Part shown: piece by piece, positions 55,393 to 64,000 of the stretch
Layout of the letters: the number at the start of each line of letters is the position of its first letter
How positions within the stretch are numbered: the stretch's first letter is position 1
Source of the DNA: Pseudomonas aeruginosa PAO1
Lineage (GTDB): Bacteria > Pseudomonadota > Gammaproteobacteria > Pseudomonadales > Pseudomonadaceae
Assembly (NCBI RefSeq): GCF_000006765.1
Contig: NC_002516.2
DNA: 64,000 nt
Strand: one strand, 5' to 3'
Made by a program: the position numbers and the translations under genes
The notes under the pieces: generated by a model
Told to the model about the DNA's origin: nothing
The model's database searches: none
What the model saw: only the letters and a program-made list of their open reading frames with translations

Positions 55393-56697
55393 ATGAAAAC
55401 CCTCCGCACCTTGCCGGCGCTGCTCTGCGCCGGTTTCCTCGGTCTCTCCGCGCAGGCCGCCGAAGACAGCCGCAGCGGCCCGCTGGCCGGGTTCGGCGAA
55501 CGACTCCAGCGCCACGGCGTGAAGACCCACGCGCAGTTCTGGAGCCTGTCGCTGAAGAACCTCGACACCGGCCCGCGCCAGCACAGCTTCGGCAACAGCG
55601 GCGACCTGTTCCTCGGCGCCGACCTCGACCTCGCCACCCTCGCCGGCCTGGACGGCGCCTCGCTGCACATCGAGGAAACCCTGTTCATCCTCGACCGCGG
55701 CACCGGTCAGCCCACCGGGCCGAGCTGGCAGGGCGCGGTGGGCAGCTACTTCGGCGGCGCGCCGCTGCACAACGACATCGGCGCCAACCAGCTGAGCCTG
55801 CTCACCTGGCAGCAGCAGTGGCTGGGCGGACGCCTCGACAGCCATCTCGGACGGACCAATGCGCGGCGCTATTTCCTGATCTACAACTGCGAGACCGTGG
55901 TCACCTGCAACGACCCGATCATCGACGCCTCCACCGGCATCCTGCCGCCGCCCTACGGCGCCTGGGGCGGCTACCTGAAGTACCGGGCGACCCCGACCCT
56001 GTACCTGCACGCCGGGGCCTTCGAGTCCAACCCGGTGGATTACCTGAAGAAGCGCCATGGCCTCGATTTCGGCACCGACGACGCCAGCGGCACCAGCCTG
56101 CTGCTGGGGATCGGCGACAAGCGCGAGGAAAGCCTCGATCCCTACCGCTCGCACTATGAACTCAACGCCTACCTGAACACCGCCAACCAGGTCGACCCGC
56201 TCACCGGCGCCAGCGACCACGGCAGCGCCGGCGGCTTCTTCAAGTTCCAGCAGCTGTTCTGGCGCGCCGACGGCGGCCGCCTCGATTCGCCGAGGGCGCT
56301 GGGGCTGTTCGGCTCGCTGTCGGTATCGGCCGACGACAAGCAGCCGTTCCGTCATTTCGCCGAGCTGGGCCTGACCTACCATGCGCCCTTCGACCGCACG
56401 CGGGACAAGCTCAACCTCAAGGCCAGCTACCTGCGCCTGAACGATCACCAGCTGGAGTTCCAGCGCCAGGCGCGGATCGCCGCTGGCGGCGATGCGAAAC
56501 TCGGCCAGCGCGACGTGTACGCCCTGGAAACCAATGCGCACATCGCACTGACCCCGCACATCGCGCTGGAGCCGTCGGTGCAGTACATCTTCAACCCGGA
56601 CAACTACTACAACCCCGGCGCTCGCGAACTGAGCGGAGACGGTTTCGTCGTCGGCCTGCAACTGATGGTCGACATGGGCTCGCTGCTGGGGCTTTAG
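55393..56697 (+). CDS. OprB-family carbohydrate-selective porin (PA4099)
   Basis: Signal peptide; GADLDLATLAG; LETNAHIALTPHIALEPSVQYIFNP beta-strand pattern. Confidence 0.82.
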   Translation: MKTLRTLPALLCAGFLGLSAQAAEDSRSGPLAGFGERLQRHGVKTHAQFWSLSLKNLDTGPRQHSFGNSGDLFLGADLDLATLAGLDGASLHIEETLFILDRGTGQPTGPSWQGAVGSYFGGAPLHNDIGANQLSLLTWQQQWLGGRLDSHLGRTNARRYFLIYNCETVVTCNDPIIDASTGILPPPYGAWGGYLKYRATPTLYLHAGAFESNPVDYLKKRHGLDFGTDDASGTSLLLGIGDKREESLDPYRSHYELNAYLNTANQVDPLTGASDHGSAGGFFKFQQLFWRADGGRLDSPRALGLFGSLSVSADDKQPFRHFAELGLTYHAPFDRTRDKLNLKASYLRLNDHQLEFQRQARIAAGGDAKLGQRDVYALETNAHIALTPHIALEPSVQYIFNPDNYYNPGARELSGDGFVVGLQLMVDMGSLLGL

Positions 56698-56706
56698 CGC
56701 GCCGCC

Positions 56707-56745
56707 TGGCAGCCTCGGTCAACCCCGCCGGCAGGCTGGGACAAG
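56707..56745 (+). promoter_or_regulatory. Tandem AraC/FeaR-type boxes upstream of the GMC oxidoreductase
   Basis: TGGCA-N8-CAAC (56707) and CGGCA-GGCTGGGA-CAAG (56729), 22 bp apart. Confidence 0.62.
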
Positions 56746-56851
56746 CGGCCGGGCGCGCTTCCCCGTCCAATGGAGTAGCGTCGCGCCCATGGGCGCGGGG
56801 CGAAAAAGAACGCCGGGCGAGGCCCGGCAGCACACCCAGAAAGGTGCCGAC

Positions 56852-58531
56852 ATGACTTCCACTGCCCGCCGCTCGTTCGACTACATCGTGGTCGGCGCCG
56901 GCTCCGCCGGTTGCGTCCTGGCCAACCGTCTTTCCGCCGATCCCGCCGTCTCGGTCTGCCTGGTCGAGGCCGGCCCCAGCGACCGCACGCCGCTCCCCGC
57001 CGCCTACATCCGCACGCCGGCCGGGATCATCCGCCTGATCGCCAACCCGAAGTGGAACTGGATGCATCGCTTCGCCGCCCAGCCCGGCACCGCCAACCAG
57101 CCGATCGCCTGCCCGCGCGGCAAGGTCTGGGGCGGCTCCAGCGCGATCAACGGGATGATCTACATCCGCGGCGACCGCCACGACTACGACCGCTGGGCAT
57201 CCCTCGGCAACCGTGGCTGGAGCTACGACGAGCTGCTGCCGTACTTTCGCCGCTCGGAACATTTCGAGCCGGGCGAATCGCCCTGGCACGGGCGCGGCGG
57301 CGAATTGAACGTCGCCGCGCAGCGCAGCCCGGGCCCGATCAACCAGGTGTTCTTCCAGGCCGCCGAGGAAATGGGCTGGCCGTACAACGCCGACTTCAAC
57401 GGCGAGCGCCAGGAAGGCATCGGCCCGTTCCACGTCACCCAGGTCAACGGCGAACGCTGTAGCGCGGCGCGCGCCTTCCTGCACCCGGCCCTGGCGCGGC
57501 CCAACCTCACCGTGCTCAGCTCGGCGCTGACCCTGCGCGTGCTGCTGGAAGGTACCCGCGCCACCGGCGTGGAGATCAGCCAGGCTGGCGCGGTCGTGCA
57601 ATTGCAGGCACGCCGCGAAGTGATCCTCAGCGCCGGCTCGATCAACTCGCCGCAGCTCCTGTTGCTCTCCGGCATCGGCCCGGCGGCGGAACTGGCGCGC
57701 CACGGCATCGTCCAGCGCCATGAGTTGCCTGGGGTCGGCGAGAACCTGCAGGACCACCAGGACATCGTGCTGATGTACCGCACCGAGGCCAAGCTCGGCT
57801 ACGGCCTGGGCTTCTCGCCGAAGGGCTGGCTGCCGCTGCTGCGCTCGCCCTGGCAGTACCTGTTCGGCCGGCGCGGGGCGCTGACCTCGAACACCGTCGA
57901 GTCCGGTGGCTTCCTCCGCCTCGACCCGCAGGCAGAGACCCCGGAGCTGGGTCTGATCGTCGCCCCCGCGCTGAAGAACCAGCCGCAGCGCCTGGTCCCC
58001 TTCGGCCACGGGGTCAGCCTGCACGTCGCGGTGATGCACCCGCAGAGCCGCGGGCGGGTCCGCCTGAACTCGCCAGACCCGCACGACCGGCCGCTGATCG
58101 AAGCCAACTTCCTCAGCCACCCTGCCGACCTCGATACCCTGGTCCAGGGTTTCCAACTGGTCCGCAAACTGGCCGCCAGCCGCAGCTTCGCCCGTCACCT
58201 CAAGGGCGAGCTGGTACCGGGCCCGCAGGTTTCCAGCCGCGGCCAGATCGAGGCCTGGATCCGCGCCAACCTGGGCACCGTGTTCCATCCGGTGGGCACC
58301 TGCAAGATGGGCCACGACCAGCTCGCGGTGGTCGACGACCAGTTGCGCGTGCACGGCCTGCAAGGCCTGCGGGTGGCCGATGCGTCGATCATGCCGACGC
58401 TGATCACCGGCAATACCAACGCCCCGGCGATCATGATCGGCGAGAAGGCCGCCGACCTGATCCTCGGCAAGCCGGCGCCCCATGCACCGCCCGCGCGACA
58501 ACCGGCCGTGCAGGCTCTGGCCGGCGCCTGA
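56852..58531 (+). CDS. GMC-family FAD oxidoreductase (PA4100)
   Basis: DYIVVGAGSAGC, PRGKVWGGSSAINGMIYIRG, VFHPVGTCKMG, GNTNAPAIMIGEKAAD. Confidence 0.95.
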   Translation: MTSTARRSFDYIVVGAGSAGCVLANRLSADPAVSVCLVEAGPSDRTPLPAAYIRTPAGIIRLIANPKWNWMHRFAAQPGTANQPIACPRGKVWGGSSAINGMIYIRGDRHDYDRWASLGNRGWSYDELLPYFRRSEHFEPGESPWHGRGGELNVAAQRSPGPINQVFFQAAEEMGWPYNADFNGERQEGIGPFHVTQVNGERCSAARAFLHPALARPNLTVLSSALTLRVLLEGTRATGVEISQAGAVVQLQARREVILSAGSINSPQLLLLSGIGPAAELARHGIVQRHELPGVGENLQDHQDIVLMYRTEAKLGYGLGFSPKGWLPLLRSPWQYLFGRRGALTSNTVESGGFLRLDPQAETPELGLIVAPALKNQPQRLVPFGHGVSLHVAVMHPQSRGRVRLNSPDPHDRPLIEANFLSHPADLDTLVQGFQLVRKLAASRSFARHLKGELVPGPQVSSRGQIEAWIRANLGTVFHPVGTCKMGHDQLAVVDDQLRVHGLQGLRVADASIMPTLITGNTNAPAIMIGEKAADLILGKPAPHAPPARQPAVQALAGA

Positions 58532-58792
58532 CTAGCCGCCCTGGCTGCAGGCGCTGGCGTACTTGCGGTAGGCCAGCGAATGCAGCTTGCCGGCGGAGTC
58601 TAGGTAGTCCATCCGTGCATCGACGATCTCGCAGGTGGTCGACGCCTGTTCCTGGGTCGCCACCACCTTGTGCACATCCAGCGGCATGCCGTAGCGGTAG
58701 CTTTCGGTCGGTACCGGTGCGGCGGCCTGGGCGGCGAACGCGGGAAGCGCAAGCGCGGCGAGCAGGGTGGTGGCGAGCAGGGTGCGAGTCAT
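58532..58792 (-). CDS. DUF2790 small exported protein (86 aa)
   Basis: Signal peptide; YRYGMPLDVHKVV, CEIVDARMDYLDSAG and terminal Cys. Confidence 0.82.
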   Translation of the reverse strand: MTRTLLATTLLAALALPAFAAQAAAPVPTESYRYGMPLDVHKVVATQEQASTTCEIVDARMDYLDSAGKLHSLAYRKYASACSQGG

Positions 58793-58929
58793 GGGGGATC
58801 TCCTGGCGGCAGGACCGCGTCGGTGGAAGGCGACATGCCTTCGTCGAGGCCTATTCCAGGCCGCGGAGTTGTCCCGGATGTGTCGCTGGAATGCCCGATT
58901 CGTCAGCCGCTGTATCGCCGCTGCCGGCC

Positions 58930-59114
58930 GATACATGGCCGTACATTCGCCGCCCCGCTCCCGCCGGACGAATCGCGCCCGGCGCCATCCGTCGTCTCCC
59001 CCGTTCGCGACAGCGACAACCGGGCTTTTTTGCACGCCCCGGTATTCGCCCCGGCTCCGGATACAGTGCAATACAAACCCCGGCAGGCAAGCGCCGCGGG
59101 CGCGGATACACTGC
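58930..59114. promoter_or_regulatory. Probable BfmR boxes (GATACAnnGC, 10-bp direct repeats)
   Basis: GATACATGGC-CGTACA (58930), GATACAGTGC-AATACA (59060), GATACACTGC (59105). Confidence 0.7.
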
Positions 59115-59148
59115 TTGCAAGCACACCAACCGCCACGGGAGCCAGGCA

Positions 59149-59885
<737 letters not shown>

Positions 59886-59889
<4 letters not shown>

Positions 59890-61190
59890 AGCTCGCCGTG
59901 CCGCGCCCGCGCAGCCTCGCCGCGCGCCTGGCGCTGATCCTCTTCGCCGGGCTGGTGCTGGCCTACGGGCTGTCCTTCGCCTCGCAGTTCTACGAGCGCT
60001 ACCAGACCGCGAAGCACATGATGCTCGACAGCCTCGAACAGGACGTGGCGATCTCGGTAGCCATGCTCGACCGCCTGACGCCCGCCGAGCGCGAGGCCTG
60101 GCTGCCGCGCCTGGAACGACGCACCTACCGCTATCGCCTCGACGCCGGCGAGCCCGGCCAGCCGCTGGCGCTGGCCGACGCGCCGGTTGCCGCGCACTCC
60201 ATCGAACGCGCCCTCGACGGTCAATACCCGCTGACCCTGCGCACGGTGGCCGACAGCCGTCCGCACTTCCAGGTCCTCCTGCGCCTGCGCGACGGCAGCC
60301 CGCTGACCATCGACGTCACGCCGGCCCCGGTGCCGCTGTCCGGCTGGCTGCCGCTGGTACTGCTGGTGCAGTTGCTCCTGCTGCTGCTCTGCACCGGCCT
60401 CGCGGTGCGCACCGCCATCGGTCCGCTGACCCGGCTGGTGAAGGCCGTGGAACATCTCGATCCGAATCGTCCGGCACAGCCTCTCGCGGAAACCGGCCCA
60501 CGCGAAGTGGCGCATGCGGCGGCGGCCTTCAATGCCATGCAGGCGCGCATCGCCGACTACCTCAAGGAGCGCATGCAGTTGCTCGCGGCGATTTCCCACG
60601 ACCTGCAGACGCCGATCACGCGGATGAAGCTGCGCGTCGAGTTCATGGACGCCTCCAGCGACAGGGACAAGCTGTGGAACGATCTCGAAGAGATGCAGCA
60701 CCTGGTCCGCGAAGGCGTGGCCTATGCCCGCAGCATGCACGGCAGCACCGAAACCAGTTGCCGGGTGGACCTCGACGCCTTCCTCGACAGCCTGGTCTTC
60801 GACTACCAGGACAGCGGCAAGCAGGTACAACTCGACGGCCGTACCGGCGCGGTGATCGACACCCGTCCGCACGCCCTGCGCCGGGTGCTGGTGAACCTGG
60901 TCGACAATGCGCTGAAGTTCGCCGGCGCCGCGCGCCTGGAAGTGGAACGCCGTACCGATGGCGGCACGCGAATCCAGGTGCTGGACAATGGCCCGGGGAT
61001 TCCCGCCGAGGAACTCGACGAGGTGCTCAAGCCCTTCTACCGGGTGGAAAACTCGCGCAATCGCGACACCGGTGGCACCGGCCTCGGCCTGGCCATCGCG
61101 CAGCAGCTGAGCCTGGCCCTCGGCGGCCGCCTGACCCTGGCCAACCGCGCCGGCGGCGGGCTTTGCGCGCGCATCGAGCTGGACCCCTGA
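59886..61190 (+). CDS. bfmS: Sensor histidine kinase BfmS
   Basis: Two TMs, HAMP, ISHDLQTP (H238), NLVDNALKF, DNGPGI, GGTGLGLAI. Confidence 0.95.
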
Positions 61191-61196
61191 GGCGCC

Positions 61197-61245
61197 CGTA
61201 CAGAGCGATACATAACCGCCCTCGGCGGACACACTGCGGATAAAC
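61197..61245 (+). promoter_or_regulatory. Probable BfmR boxes upstream of PA4103
   Basis: CGTACA-GAGC-GATACA (61197) and GACACACTGC-GGATAAA (61228). Confidence 0.6.
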
Positions 61246-61319
61246 CCGCTTGCAACACTCCTGGCCACGGGAAGCGGCGGCACATCGCCGAGCCGCTCCC
61301 GGCAACCAGGAGCCCCACC

Positions 61320-61949
61320 ATGACCGTCCCAACCTCTCAATCCGCCTGGCACGGCTGGCGACTGTTCGCCGTCCTCGCCGTCGCCGTGCTGTGCATGACC
61401 GCCCTCGTCCTGGCTCTCCAGGCGCAACCGGTGGAGGGCCTGCGCAGCGCCATCCGCGCCACCGCGCGCAGTTCCTTCGCGCTGTTCCTCGCCGCTTTCC
61501 TCGCGTCCTCGCTGGCGACCCTGGTGCCCGGCCCGGGGACCCGCGCGCTGCTCCGTGAAAGGCGCTACCTGGGCCTGGCCTTCGCCTTCTCCCACGCAGT
61601 ACACGCCTTGCTGATCCTGGCCTACTGGAAGCTGTTCCCCGAGACATTCTGGAGCGGCCGCTCGGTCGCGGCGAACATCCCCGGCTCGATCGGCTACCTG
61701 TTCATCCTGCTGCTCACCCTCACCTCCTTCCGCACCCCGGCCCGACTGCTCGGCCCACGCGCCTGGAAAGCCCTGCACTCGACCGGCACCTGGGTGCTGG
61801 CGGGCATCTTCTGCCTGTCGTTCTTCAAACGCATCCCCATGGGCGGCTGGTACGTACTGGCGTTCGCCACGATCTTCTCCGCCATCGTCCTCAAGCTCAC
61901 CGCCAAGCTCGCCGTGCGCTTGCGTCGTCGCGACGTACAGCCGGCCTGA
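61320..61949 (+). CDS. Ferric reductase-like (MsrQ/YedZ-type) membrane protein (PA4103)
   Basis: [15 protein letters not shown] and WKALH His motifs; about 6 TMs. Confidence 0.82.
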
Positions 61950-61980
61950 CCCATCCACCGCCCTCAACGAGACATCGATC

Positions 61981-62490
61981 ATGCAAGCATCCGACCTGCG
62001 CGCCTGGCGCCGACCCTTCGCCCTGCTCGACCGCTGCGGCGGCTGGAGCGCCGACCTGTCCCTGCGACTGTTCCTGGCCTGGGAGTTCTTCGAGTCCGGT
62101 TGGGAAAAGTGGAACGGCGAGAACTGGTTCGGCGATATCCAGTCGGCTTTCCCCTTTCCCTTCGACCGCCTGCCCGCCGCCTTCAACTGGGAACTGTCGC
62201 TGTGGGCCGAACTGCTCGGCGCGCTGTTCCTCCTGCTCGGCCTCGGTACCCGCCTGACCGCCCTGGTGCTGATCGTCGTCACCCTGGTGGCGACCGCCGC
62301 CGTACACTGGCCGGCGGAGTGGTCGAGCCTGGCGGAACTGGCCCGCGGCTACTCGATCACCGACCACGGCTTCGGCAATTTCAAGCTCCCGGCGATCTAC
62401 CTGGCGGCGCTGCTGCCGCTGCTGTTGGCGGGGGCGGGGAAGCTGAGCCTGGACCACTGGCTCGGGCGGCGCCTGGGCCTGTCCCGCTAG
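61981..62490 (+). CDS. DoxX-family membrane protein (PA4104)
   Basis: [42 protein letters not shown]. Confidence 0.9.
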
Positions 62491-62508
62491 GATTCGGCCA
62501 GCCACGGA

Positions 62509-62542
62509 AAAACCCCGGAACGCGATCGCCTCCGGGGGTTTT
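62509..62542. terminator. Bidirectional terminator between convergent genes
   Basis: AAAACCCCGGA...TCCGGGGGTTTT. Confidence 0.7.
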
Positions 62543-62573
62543 CACAGCAAGCCAGAACCATCCCACCCACCGC

Positions 62574-62713
62574 GTAGGGCGAATAGCGCCAACGGCGCTA
62601 TTCGCCGATACACCGGACCCACCCCGGCGGATAACCGCAAGCGGTTATCCGCCCTACACCAAGACCGTCCCACCCACCACGTAGGGCGGATAGCGCCAAA
62701 GGCGCTATCCGCC
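62574..62713. repeat. Three GTAG-type REP palindromes (+,-,+)
   Basis: GTAGGGCGAATAGCGCC..GGCGCTATTCGCC (62574), GGCGGATAACCGC..GCGGTTATCCGCCCTAC (62626), GTAGGGCGGATAGCGCC..GGCGCTATCCGCC (62681). Confidence 0.9.
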
Positions 62714-62742
62714 GATGCATCGACTCCACAAGGGCTGCGTCG

Positions 62743-63498
62743 TCATCCGCCCGCCCAATCGCGTTCCAGGGTTCCGAGCACGACACCCTGGGTCCGCAAC
62801 GCTGCCAGCAACTCCAGCCCCGCCGCGTCGAGCGCTCCGGGCGCACTCCGCGCCTCGAGCGCCAGCGCCGCCAGGTGCTCGCGCCCGCTCAGGCGCCGTC
62901 TCGCCAGCGACTCCAGCAGGCGGCAGGCCAGCGGAGTCAGGCGCGCGGTATGCACGCGATGCGAGGAATCGCGGTGCATCAACAGCAGGGTCGGTTCCGC
63001 AGGCGCTTCGGCGAGCGCGACGTCCTCTTCGAGCCGATGCACCGGCCAGCGATAGCCCAGCGGCAGCGCCAGGCTCGACAGCAGCGGCACCCCGTCGAGC
63101 AGGTCGCCTTCACGCCGATACGGCGGATCGTCGGGCTCGGCCAGGTAGAGGCGCGTTTCGCTCCATTCGAAGTGGGCCAACTCGGCTTGCCACGCCGGCC
63201 GATACTCGCCCCGCTGCCGCAGGTAGTCGACGAAGACCCCGGCGATACGGGTGAACAGGGGGGTATGGCTTCTCTCCTCGCGATAGAACTCGCGCACCAG
63301 GCCATGCCACTGCTGCTCGCCAAGCAGCCCGCGCAAGCGCGGGAAGCCGCTGGCAAGGAGGCCTTCGATGGCGTTGTAGAACAGCTCGCGGTAGACCCGC
63401 AGGCGACGTTCTTCGATGTCCGGCGGCGGCGCATTGCCAAGCGGGTCGCGCAGGTGCCGGGCGAGGCTGAACTGCTGTTGGCGCAGGCGCTCATCCAT
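62743..63498 (-). CDS. DUF2063 (HvfC/BufC-like) MNIO partner protein (PA4105)
   Basis: [40 protein letters not shown]. Confidence 0.88.
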
Positions 63499-64000
63499 GA
63501 CGGCGTCCCTCGTCGCGTTGCCATTGGCGGATCTGCTCCACTTCCAGCAGCAGTTCGCCCAGCGGCGGATAGTTGAAGTCCCGCTCGAGCAGGGTCGGGC
63601 GCACGCCGAAGCGACGATAGGCGGCTCCGAGCAAGGCCCAGACGCCGGGCTTCACGGCGGCACCATGGGTGTCGATCTTCAGGTCCGGCGCCTCGTCGTA
63701 GTGCCCCGCCACATGGTAGGCGGCGACCCGCCCGGGCGGCAGCCGGACGAGGAAGTCGAGGGCGTCGTAGCCGTGGTTGCAGGCGTTGACGAACAGGTTG
63801 TTGACGTCCAGCAACAGGTCGCAGTCGGCCTCGTCGAGTACCGCGTTGACGAACTCGATCTCGCTCATCTCCCGGTACGGCGCTGCATAGTAGGAAATGT
63901 TCTCCACCGCGATGCGCCGCTCCAGGCGCTCCTGCGCCTCGCGGATGCGCGCCGCGACGTGACGCACCGCGGCCTCGGTGAACGGCAGCGGCAACAGATC
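63491..64000 (-). CDS. DUF692 multinuclear non-heme iron oxidative enzyme (MNIO), 3' part (PA4106)
   Basis: [29 protein letters not shown] and TLLERD iron-ligand motifs. Confidence 0.92.

Follow-up and report, generated by a model that had tools for sequence, protein, structure and literature searches.

A probable HvfA/oxazolin-type RiPP metallophore cluster of Pseudomonas aeruginosa, arranged as two convergent BfmR-activated operons

The end of a 64,000-nucleotide stretch of the Pseudomonas aeruginosa PAO1 genome (NC_002516.2; referred to here as the window) raises the question of what is made by two short operons that face each other next to the regulatory genes bfmR and bfmS. These two genes, encoding an OmpR-type response regulator (PA4101, 59149-59889, plus strand) and an EnvZ-like sensor histidine kinase (PA4102, 59886-61190, plus strand), lie directly upstream of the PA4103-PA4106 region. 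PA4103 (61320-61949, plus strand), encoding a six-helix membrane protein of 209 aa, and PA4104 or hvfX (61981-62490, plus strand), encoding a membrane protein of the DoxX type that belongs to the HvfX family, converge, with 252 bp between the halves, on PA4105 or hvfC (62743-63498, minus strand) and PA4106 or hvfB (63491 to the window end at 64000, minus strand). A sequence-only reading of the window had described a split, convergent RiPP-like module beside bfmRS, and coordinates and Pfam matches located all four genes where it had put them. As the window holds only the C-terminal 169 of the 276 residues of PA4106, the full-length gene and the neighboring efhP (PA4107) were taken from locus L001 (20.7 kb, 19 called genes), which matches the window over its final 11,000 bases with 0 mismatches. 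We consider it highly probable that these genes form the P. aeruginosa HvfA/oxazolin (EGKCG, captophorin) RiPP metallophore cluster, divided over two convergent operons that are both activated by BfmR. The cluster, the precursor and the regulation have already been published, as has the thiooxazole chemistry of relatives (2024-26; PMC11252979, PMC13097082). The idea thus exists as a bioinformatic statement, leaving confirmation and detail rather than discovery.

PA4106 is a multinuclear non-haem iron oxidase (MNIO). Its 169 codons within the window match the Pfam family MbnB_TglH_ChrH (E = 1.1e-63) and the NCBIfam HvfB model (E = 2.1e-75), and for the complete protein, taken from L001, the latter model gives 409.5 bits (NF003818, cut-off 360). 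It also matches the structure of a DUF692 protein of H. somni (PDB 3BWW, E = 1.1e-72). Across 38 orthologues, nine residues (H61, H96, E140, D172, N175, H203, D217, H219, and E246) do not vary, and they fall in motifs common to 3BWW; following the MbnB ligand pattern, we take them to be candidate metal ligands. The MNIO partner PA4105 scores 251.6 bits against NCBIfam HvfC (cut-off 142), combines an N-terminal DUF2063 domain with an RRE-type C-terminal domain (Pfam NGO1945_C), and matches PDB 3DEE with an E-value of 4.5e-5. The start of hvfC overlaps the stop of hvfB by 8 nt, pointing to translational coupling, and physical interaction of PA4105 and PA4106 has been reported by Co-IP (PMC11445079, 2024). 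Assignment of PA4106 to the bufferin enzymes was rejected, its score of 256.2 against NCBIfam MNIO_BufB being below the cut-off of 310. The architecture had initially been read as bufferin/oxazolin, and of these two labels the oxazolin/HvfA (EGKCG) one was borne out and the bufferin one was not.

The precursor was predicted to lie just outside the window and to be EfhP, and efhP (L001: 8636-9103) is indeed the next gene after the window end, directly upstream of hvfB. Both features expected of the gene upstream of the DUF692 gene, a signal peptide and cysteine motifs, are present: the protein consists of a Sec signal peptide, four EGKCG motifs and two EF-hands, in this order. The signal peptide was called previously by SignalP 5.0 (PMC9132961), and the region reads SAFA followed by VEP, in which the AFA motif fits cleavage. 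The EGKCG motifs are organized as two (A/G)EGKCGEGKCG doublets, GEGKCGEGKCG and then AEGKCGEGKCG. EfhP scores 32.4 against the NCBIfam KCGExKCG_twice domain (cut-off 19.5) and 24 against the HvfA equivalog model (cut-off 95), which limits its membership to the domain level; NCBI and UniRef name its homologues HvfA-family RiPP metallophores. In Pfam, the models EF-hand_1, _5, _6, and _7 all exceed their cut-offs, and the two canonical 12-residue EF-hand loops read DTDHDGKVSRAE and DSDHDGFISEAE. Domain matches in NCBIfam and Pfam are limited to the EGKCG domain and the EF-hands. In the AF2 model, residues 1-77 are unstructured and two helix-loop-helix units span about 80-150.

By analogy with characterized relatives, the cysteines of EfhP are probably converted into copper-binding rings. 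HvfBC modifies every cysteine of AEGKCGEGKCG (PMC11252979), and its product has been reassigned as 5-thiooxazole, with two repeats as the minimal substrate (PMC13097082). Alternatively, EfhP could be a Ca2+ sensor only, with unmodified cysteines acting as iron or redox sensors or forming disulphides, and with PA4106 and PA4105 acting elsewhere or being inactive. All published EfhP phenotypes are related to Ca2+ or Fe, iron sensing by the cysteines has been proposed by the authors of the EfhP studies, and the published Ca2+ affinity (Kd 13.7 uM) is that of unmodified protein produced in E. coli. The EfhP motif, however, matches the proven HvfBC substrate motif, efhP, hvfB, and hvfC form one operon in which hvfB and hvfC are translationally coupled, the candidate catalytic residues of PA4106 are invariant, and precursors that have no EF-hands fill the same slot in other species (see below). 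A role in Ca2+ sensing only is therefore regarded as very unlikely. In the literature searched, no report of EfhP modification or copper binding was found, nor an experimental link of PA4107 or BfmRS to copper.

The proposed route from precursor to metallophore follows the characterized systems. In the cytoplasm, HvfC would hold the EfhP precursor while HvfB, using O2, would convert each of the four cysteines to a 5-thiooxazole, a change predicted to give a mass loss of 4 Da per cysteine and absorbance at about 305 nm. The modified protein would then be exported by Sec and cleaved by signal peptidase after AFA. In periplasmic EfhP, a disordered segment that binds copper through its thiooxazoles would be linked to a pair of EF-hands that binds Ca2+.

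Whether the two halves belong together can be judged from their regulation and their distribution. BfmR directly binds and activates the promoters of both PA4103-PA4104 and efhP-PA4106-PA4105, as shown by EMSA, footprint and ChIP-seq (PMC4148453, 2014; PMC8025907, 2021), which bears out the expected control of both halves by a two-component system. The gene most strongly activated by BfmR is efhP (11,268-fold; PMC8025907), and expression of the cluster is raised in cystic-fibrosis lungs (PMC4148453). In the PA4103 promoter we located a BfmR box, TACAGAGCGATACA (61199-61212, plus strand), followed by TAAC, which agrees with the published footprint GATACAnnAC and with the ChIP motif TACAA-N3-GATACA. 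The pattern TACAnnnnGATACA was matched once in 64 kb, at this box, where 0 matches were expected. A BfmR box is found upstream of the PA4103 orthologue in 63 of 81 loci, and an unlinked efhP locus of 16.5 kb contains four GATACA hexamers, three of them at most 130 bp upstream of efhP. ECF-sigma control, mentioned as usual for the architecture, did not hold up: reports of sigma/anti-sigma genes are confined to Buf1 clusters, and such control is not seen here.

BfmR carries the Pfam domains Response_reg and Trans_reg_C, and BfmS carries HAMP, HisKA, and HATPase_c. The best NCBIfam matches are OmpR and EnvZ, respectively, both below their cut-offs. A heavy-metal or copper two-component system of the CopRS/CusRS/CzcRS type was considered and rejected, with BfmS scoring 117 against the heavy-metal sensor kinase model (cut-off 292.55) and BfmR 139.9 against the corresponding response-regulator model (cut-off 279.2; TIGR01386 and TIGR01387).

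For the comparative survey, 81 loci were gathered with PA4103 as query, a sample that by its design covers hvf clusters only where PA4103 is present. The convergent seven-gene layout was found in the same order and orientation in 38 of these loci, from different species and distributed over Pseudomonas, Ectopseudomonas, Phytopseudomonas, and Rheinheimera, which indicates that the arrangement is not due to chance. An accidental and functionally meaningless juxtaposition of two operons might be proposed from the P. soli genome, in which efhP-hvfBC is located at a locus without PA4103, hvfX, and bfmRS, and from the distance between the halves, which reaches 7.6 kb (L010). Given the identical order and orientation in 38 loci of four genera and the direct co-regulation of both halves by BfmR, we regard this explanation as scarcely credible.

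A precursor with three to seven EGKCG motifs is encoded directly upstream of hvfB in 33 of the 38 syntenic loci. Four syntenic loci (L017, L022, L056, and L058) contain hvfBC, and no convincing EGKCG or other Cys-rich precursor was detected upstream of hvfB. In five loci of the putida group, which form one nested clade (support 97/87), the EGKCG core is kept and the EF-hands are absent, identifying the cysteine core as the constant feature. In the HvfB tree, the Rheinheimera copies are nested inside Pseudomonas, as expected from transfer of the module between genera.

The surroundings of the two operons were also inspected. The spacer between them contains a repeat-bearing region (62552-62729) with three REP-like 13-nt palindromes and a 71-nt direct repeat; similar palindromes are present at 2499 and 2612 of the window. 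An Rfam search of 56000-64000, including the spacer, gave no match, and a scan for terminators and promoters gave no signal above background. Divergent from bfmR, a gene on the minus strand (58532-58792) encodes a small secreted DUF2790 protein (Pfam, E = 6.2e-21), and tblastn detected such a gene beside bfmR in most loci. The literature link of DUF2790 is limited to lanthanide-responsive expression in P. alloputida KT2440, and it was rejected as a known copper protein, the literature searched showing only this lanthanide-responsive expression.

PA4103 is the least conventional member of the cluster. It has no Pfam match at E <= 0.01, the only match at E <= 10 is SdpI (E = 0.019), and Ferric_reduct is not among the matches up to E <= 10. 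A profile of 82 PA4103 homologues detected no relative among PDB sequences. Since neither Pfam nor this profile gave a family, PA4103 was placed by fold comparison only. Its AF2 model (pLDDT 95.4) has STEAP4, STEAP2, STEAP1, and NOX5 as the top nine Foldseek matches in the PDB, at E-values of only 5e-3 to 0.6 and TMq of 0.45-0.60. H92 and H95 on helix 81-105 and H153 on helix 146-170 (helices 3 and 5) are nearly invariant among the 82 diverse homologues. Judged from its modeled fold, PA4103 is a six-helix ferric-reductase-domain membrane protein of the STEAP/NOX/MsrQ superfamily, and it probably carries one b-type haem. Its score against NCBIfam MsrQ is 31.6 bits (E = 1.1e-7), far below the cut-off of 130, and it was rejected as an MsrQ orthologue. 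The description of PA4103 as MsrQ-like thus applies at the level of superfamily and fold and fails at the level of the MsrQ family. That this putative haem reductase gene comes without MsrP was confirmed, as no msrP gene (Oxidored_molyb, PF00174) is present among the 19 called genes of L001. Several PA4103 orthologues have a precomputed PF01794 match. PA4104 matches Pfam DoxX (E = 1.3e-22) and scores 152.2 bits against NCBIfam HvfX (cut-off 80). The hvfX gene sits in the PA4103 operon, on the strand opposite to hvfBC, and HvfX is considered non-biosynthetic by the HvfA authors (PMC11252979).

PA4103, and perhaps HvfX, may stand outside the RiPP pathway, as a partner or target of BfmRS with an envelope redox function of its own, the RiPP operon being an optional member of the regulon. 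The pairing of bfmRS with PA4103 is the most constant association in the survey (68 of 81 loci), and the RiPP half is often absent. In 16 loci bfmRS-PA4103 occurs without any hvf gene, and in one of the loci (L043) the genes downstream of bfmRS-PA4103 are unrelated hydrolases. Of 13 loci without adjacent bfmRS, 11 have a BfmR box upstream of PA4103. In L039, which has apparently lost hvfB, an hvfC-like 5' fragment and a 3' stub of efhP remain, and bfmRS-PA4103-hvfX is intact. Pairs of a ferric-reductase-domain gene and hvfX without nearby hvfBC were found in 21 loci. Two distant relatives of PA4103 (P0132 and P0180) are located in unrelated contexts and are uninformative on function. Against a separate role stand the 38 hvfBC loci (of a sample seeded with PA4103), every one of which also has PA4103 and hvfX in this convergent layout, the nesting of Rheinheimera HvfB in Pseudomonas, which fits a module moving between genera, and the ferric-reductase genes reported in other EGKCG clusters. 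We give a separate role somewhat less than an even chance; the loci without hvf genes and the pairs without hvfBC leave any part played by PA4103 in the RiPP pathway tentative.

If PA4103 does serve the metallophore cluster, it could, speculatively, form a membrane redox pair with HvfX through its predicted haem b, and the pair might pass electrons to the periplasm, either onto Cu(II) or for maintaining the thiolates of the thiooxazoles in their reduced state. BfmRS is known as a switch for biofilm maturation and virulence. In a broader proposal, which we consider rather doubtful, BfmRS would at its evolutionary core be a system for metal and redox stress in the envelope, with PA4103 as its conserved regulon, either alone or accompanied by DoxX/HvfX and a thiooxazole metallophore; as a transmembrane electron conduit, PA4103-HvfX would serve the copper segment of EfhP, whose EF-hands would couple the binding of Ca2+ to the handling of copper. 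Were this true, the phenotypes published for efhP mutants (Ca2+, Fe, and virulence) would call for a new interpretation, since all published EfhP biochemistry was performed on unmodified recombinant protein. For a decade, work on EfhP has treated it solely as a Ca2+ sensor and has relied on recombinant protein unable to bear the modification. Should all four cysteines be thiooxazoles, EfhP would be a periplasmic protein for both Cu and Ca; BfmRS would then have a defined biochemical output, and the Ca2+-Fe-virulence phenotypes would have another basis.

Among known systems, the hvfXABC operon of nontypeable Haemophilus influenzae (oxazolin; PMC11252979) shares with the cluster described here an HvfB-type MNIO, an RRE-bearing HvfC, a DoxX/HvfX protein, and a precursor with a Sec signal and AEGKCGEGKCG repeats encoded directly upstream of the MNIO gene. 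Whereas hvfXABC is a single co-directional four-gene operon, hvfX of P. aeruginosa is on the opposite strand, behind a ferric-reductase-domain gene and under its own BfmR promoter, and two-component control is adjacent, unlike in hvfXABC. EfhP has two doublets and the H. influenzae precursor three, and of these only EfhP has a C-terminal EF-hand pair. Precursors in which EGKCG and EF-hands are fused are a described class, discussed together with EfhP (PMC12452194, 2025), and its features, a short EGKCG domain, two EF-hand_5 domains and a location beside MNIO, DUF2063, and DoxX genes, fit EfhP. That survey notes ferric-reductase genes as rare in EGKCG clusters and makes no mention of two-component systems, BfmR or a convergent layout. 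In it the N-terminus is described as a transmembrane helix; a signal peptide that is cleaved off is instead indicated by SignalP 5.0 (PMC9132961) together with the AFA motif.

In the captophorins (fontiphorin, gonophorin, and bulbicupramide; PMC13097082), MNIO and PME1 enzymes install 5-thiooxazoles on EGKCG cysteines, and the products bind Cu. Captophorin precursors are plain repeat peptides, whereas EfhP adds a folded Ca2+-binding domain, and a ferric-reductase partner or BfmR control, as in the cluster described here, is not described for them. The bufferins (BufABC) use an MNIO of a closely related subfamily and likewise have DoxX, a DUF2063 protein as partner, a precursor exported by Sec, thiooxazoles, and a role in copper stress; their precursors are of the DUF2282 or Buf2 type, and EfhP belongs to another family, EGKCG plus EF-hand. 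For the membrane half, the closest likeness is to MsrQ (YedZ) of the MsrPQ system and to the eukaryotic STEAP metalloreductases: like PA4103, both have six helices in a ferric-reductase-domain fold, and histidines are conserved on helices 3 and 5. The STEAPs act as reductases of Fe(III) and Cu(II), and PA4103 differs from STEAP2-4 in having no cytosolic NADPH/FAD domain.

The gene order of the last 7.5 kb of the window was derived from an ORF listing and Pfam and NCBIfam scans. A GMC oxidoreductase gene (56789-58531, plus strand) and a DUF2790 gene (58532-58792, minus strand) precede four plus-strand genes: bfmR (59149-59889) and bfmS (59886-61190), encoding a two-component system, PA4103 (61320-61949) and PA4104 (61981-62490; DoxX, E 1.3e-22). 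Beyond a spacer of 252 bp, the minus strand carries PA4105 (62743-63498; DUF2063 and NGO1945_C) and the 3' 510 bases of PA4106 (63491-64000; fragment against MbnB_TglH_ChrH, E 1.1e-63). ORFs and scans agree, coordinates included, with the sequence-only reading, in which DUF692 and DUF2063 genes converge on MsrQ-like and DoxX genes beside bfmRS. The start of PA4105 (hvfC) lies 8 nt ahead of the stop of PA4106 (hvfB), and this overlap suggests translational coupling. A direct repeat of 71 nt and three 13-nt palindromes resembling REP elements (GGCGGATAGCGCC..GGCGCTATCCGCC) lie in the spacer (62552-62729); because similar palindromes recur elsewhere in the window, some 60 kb off (2499-2527 and 2612-2640), the palindromes look like a dispersed REP family. 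The DUF2790 gene, divergent from bfmR, encodes a secreted protein of 86 aa with two Cys and keeps this position in most related loci; the only DUF2790 genes on which the literature reports are lanthanide-responsive ones of P. alloputida KT2440.

Full-length PA4106 scored 409.5 against the HvfB equivalog (cut-off 360) and 256 against BufB (cut-off 310); PA4105 scored 251.6 against HvfC (cut-off 142) and PA4104 152.2 against HvfX (cut-off 80). Since the three Hvf cut-offs were passed and that of BufB was not, the cluster is classified by sequence as oxazolin/HvfA (EGKCG) type and a bufferin identity was rejected; of the 'bufferin/oxazolin architecture' proposed earlier, the oxazolin part stands. 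Comparison with the PDB links PA4106 to 3BWW, a DUF692 structure from Histophilus somni (E 1.1e-72), and PA4105 to 3DEE. Nine His/Asp/Glu/Asn residues of PA4106 are invariant in 38 orthologues, with a spacing like that which we take to be the MNIO iron-ligand pattern of MbnB.

An exact-protein look-up of PA4105 identified a complete P. aeruginosa chromosome (L001), which overlaps the window over its final 11,000 bases with 0 mismatches and was therefore taken as its continuation. The gene upstream of PA4106 in L001 is efhP (PA4107), encoding a protein of 155 aa. Its signal peptide ends between SAFA and VEP, its Cys core consists of GEGKCGEGKCG, a 13-residue linker and AEGKCGEGKCG, and it has two canonical EF-hand loops (DTDHDGKVSRAE and DSDHDGFISEAE). 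EfhP scores above the cut-offs of Pfam EF-hand models and reaches 32.4 (cut-off 19.5) against the NCBIfam HvfA-type domain 'KCGExKCG_twice'. In its AF2 model (31 homologues), residues 1-77 are unstructured and residues ~80-150 form two helix-loop-helix units. Because efhP encodes EGKCG Cys motifs behind a signal peptide, the Cys-containing precursor that had been predicted directly upstream of the DUF692 gene is indeed present. In NCBI and UniRef, homologues of EfhP already bear the name 'HvfA family oxazolone/thioamide-modified RiPP metallophore'. In H. influenzae, HvfBC modifies each Cys of three AEGKCGEGKCG motifs (PMC11252979); later work reassigned the product as 5-thiooxazole and put the smallest substrate at two repeats (PMC13097082; a 2025 preprint), a requirement that the EfhP doublets fit. 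The EGKCG copy number of EfhP differs among P. aeruginosa strains (alleles P0271, P0274, P0278, P0285, P0287 and P0291), with 5 motifs in 160 aa, 4 in 155 aa, 3 in 150 aa (on 325 contigs), 2 in 145 or 132 aa, or 1 in 127 aa, the kind of series that slippage of a 15-bp unit should give. The repeat region of allele P0284 is scrambled in a frameshift-like manner.

A PA4103 profile scan of one genome per species yielded 80 loci (81 with L001), on which the other cluster genes were placed by tblastn. This survey was seeded with PA4103, and hvf clusters without that gene lie outside the sample. The full arrangement, bfmR-bfmS-PA4103-hvfX with convergent hvfC-hvfB, was found at 38 of the 81 loci, in Pseudomonas, Ectopseudomonas, Phytopseudomonas and Rheinheimera, and was oriented as in the window in 38/38. 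The other loci carried bfmRS-PA4103 only (16), bfmRS-PA4103-hvfX (13), PA4103-hvfX (8), PA4103 alone (5) or bfmS-PA4103 (1). The most stable pairing overall, and the conserved core, is bfmRS with PA4103. One bfmRS-PA4103 set (L036) is borne on plasmid Pls1 of Pseudomonas sp. R1-18.

The signal peptide and a conserved AFA-VExLxQGYQLA segment are common to all 33 precursors recovered, each of which contains between 3 and 7 EGKCG motifs. Two EF-hand loops were matched by regular expression in 27 of them and one loop only in that of locus L026, and five putida-group precursors are without EF-hands. The 27 include the Phytopseudomonas daroniae protein (L074:13663-14076), with the EF-hand pair mid-protein between one EGKCG and a C-terminal triple EGKCG. 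Based on the precursor and locus survey, the EGKCG core and hvfBC travel together and the EF-hand is an accessory, dispensable domain. As the five EF-hand-less loci form one nested clade in the HvfB tree (support 97/87), the data are consistent with a single loss in the putida group. Rheinheimera HvfB is nested within Pseudomonas, which suggests that the seven-gene module moved between genera by horizontal transfer; module loci in Rheinheimera and a Chromatiaceae bin are L011, L012, L018, L021, L025 and L026. At L017, L022, L056 and L058 hvfB-hvfC is syntenic, yet the upstream sequence yielded neither an EGKCG ORF nor any other clearly Cys-rich precursor candidate; these loci may have lost the precursor, or it may be very short or of a different type. 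In one P. soli genome, there is no linkage between efhP-hvfBC and the other half of the cluster. At L039:11134-11578, after hvfX, an hvfC-like 5' fragment accompanies the last 52 efhP codons (second EF-hand); hvfB and the EGKCG core are missing and bfmRS-PA4103-hvfX is intact, so that the site appears to be a deletion scar of hvfB. A gene of ~1,500 aa lies near efhP or its remnant at L084:2534-7063 (P. soli; ToxA_N, LRR and NEL domains) and L039:12418-16917.

In the 64 kb of the window, TACAnnnnGATACA has a single match, TACAGAGCGATACA at 61199-61212, against an expectation of none; the site fits the footprint and ChIP motif published for BfmR. This BfmR box is conserved across species, being present upstream of the PA4103 orthologue at 63 of 81 loci, among them 11 of the 13 without adjacent bfmRS. 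The efhP promoter has three GATACA half-sites, and three of the four GATACA hexamers of the unlinked P. soli locus lie <=130 bp from the efhP start. In a bfmS deletion mutant, expression of PA4100, bfmR and PA4103-PA4107 rises by a factor of more than 10; the promoters were shifted and footprinted with BfmR, and regulation is lost when the box is mutated (PMC4148453). The three promoters are the top BfmR ChIP-seq peaks, and efhP is induced 11,268-fold (PMC8025907). These published data and the box bear out both the two-component control and the co-regulation of the two halves proposed earlier. BfmRS is EnvZ/OmpR-like and did not reach the cut-offs of heavy-metal two-component families.

The Pfam scan assigned PA4103 to no family; its close homologues carry the annotation of ferric-reductase-like transmembrane proteins, and the profile search returned 1,504 representatives at E<=0.001. 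H92, H95 and H153 are nearly invariant in an 82-sequence alignment. Six long helices are seen in the AF2 model, which has a pLDDT of 95.4, and its nine best PDB matches are to STEAP4, STEAP2, STEAP1 and NOX5 (TMq 0.45-0.60, with modest E-values). Because of the histidines and the STEAP/NOX match, PA4103 is classed as a ferric-reductase-domain protein; its histidines lie on helices 3 and 5, the pattern expected for one b-type haem.

From characterised homologues, a mechanism can be proposed that builds on the established gene identities, precursor features, BfmR control and HvfB-HvfC binding. HvfC would present cytoplasmic pre-EfhP to HvfB, which would turn the four Cys into 5-thiooxazoles by oxidation; after export through Sec and cleavage, EfhP would be a periplasmic protein whose disordered segment binds copper and whose EF-hand pair binds Ca2+. 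More speculatively, PA4103, through haem b, and HvfX might pass electrons outward to reduce Cu(II) or keep thiolates reduced. The main rival to this electron transfer sees PA4103 chiefly as a partner or target of BfmRS that acts apart from the RiPP, a view favoured by the 16 loci with bfmRS-PA4103 only.

The finding itself is already known, and the earlier interpretation, including the predicted precursor, is supported. A drawing of the cluster with domain annotations appeared in 2016 (PMC4918941), PA4105-PA4106 interaction was confirmed by Co-IP and compared to TglHI (PMC11445079), and the HvfA paper reports the operon as conserved in P. aeruginosa (PMC11252979). The EfhP laboratory, whose protein was E. 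coli-made and unmodified, noticed the four EGKCG repeats and proposed iron sensing. We found no demonstration of EfhP modification or copper binding in the literature searched, and no mention of BfmRS in the RiPP literature. The present analysis adds three comparative points: the bfmRS-PA4103 core, the dispensable EF-hand and the cross-species conservation of the BfmR box.

A published survey describes precursors that fuse EGKCG motifs to EF-hands as a class of their own, discusses EfhP along with them, and records that ferric-reductase genes occur occasionally in such clusters (PMC12452194). PA4103 resembles MsrQ in fold and differs from the MsrPQ system in that no msrP gene is nearby; as an MsrQ orthologue it was rejected (31.6 bits against NCBIfam MsrQ, cut-off 130), so that 'MsrQ-like without MsrP' holds for fold and gene content and fails for orthology. 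The convergent halves differ from the H. influenzae hvf cluster, in which hvfX-A-B-C form one co-directional four-gene operon (PMC11252979).
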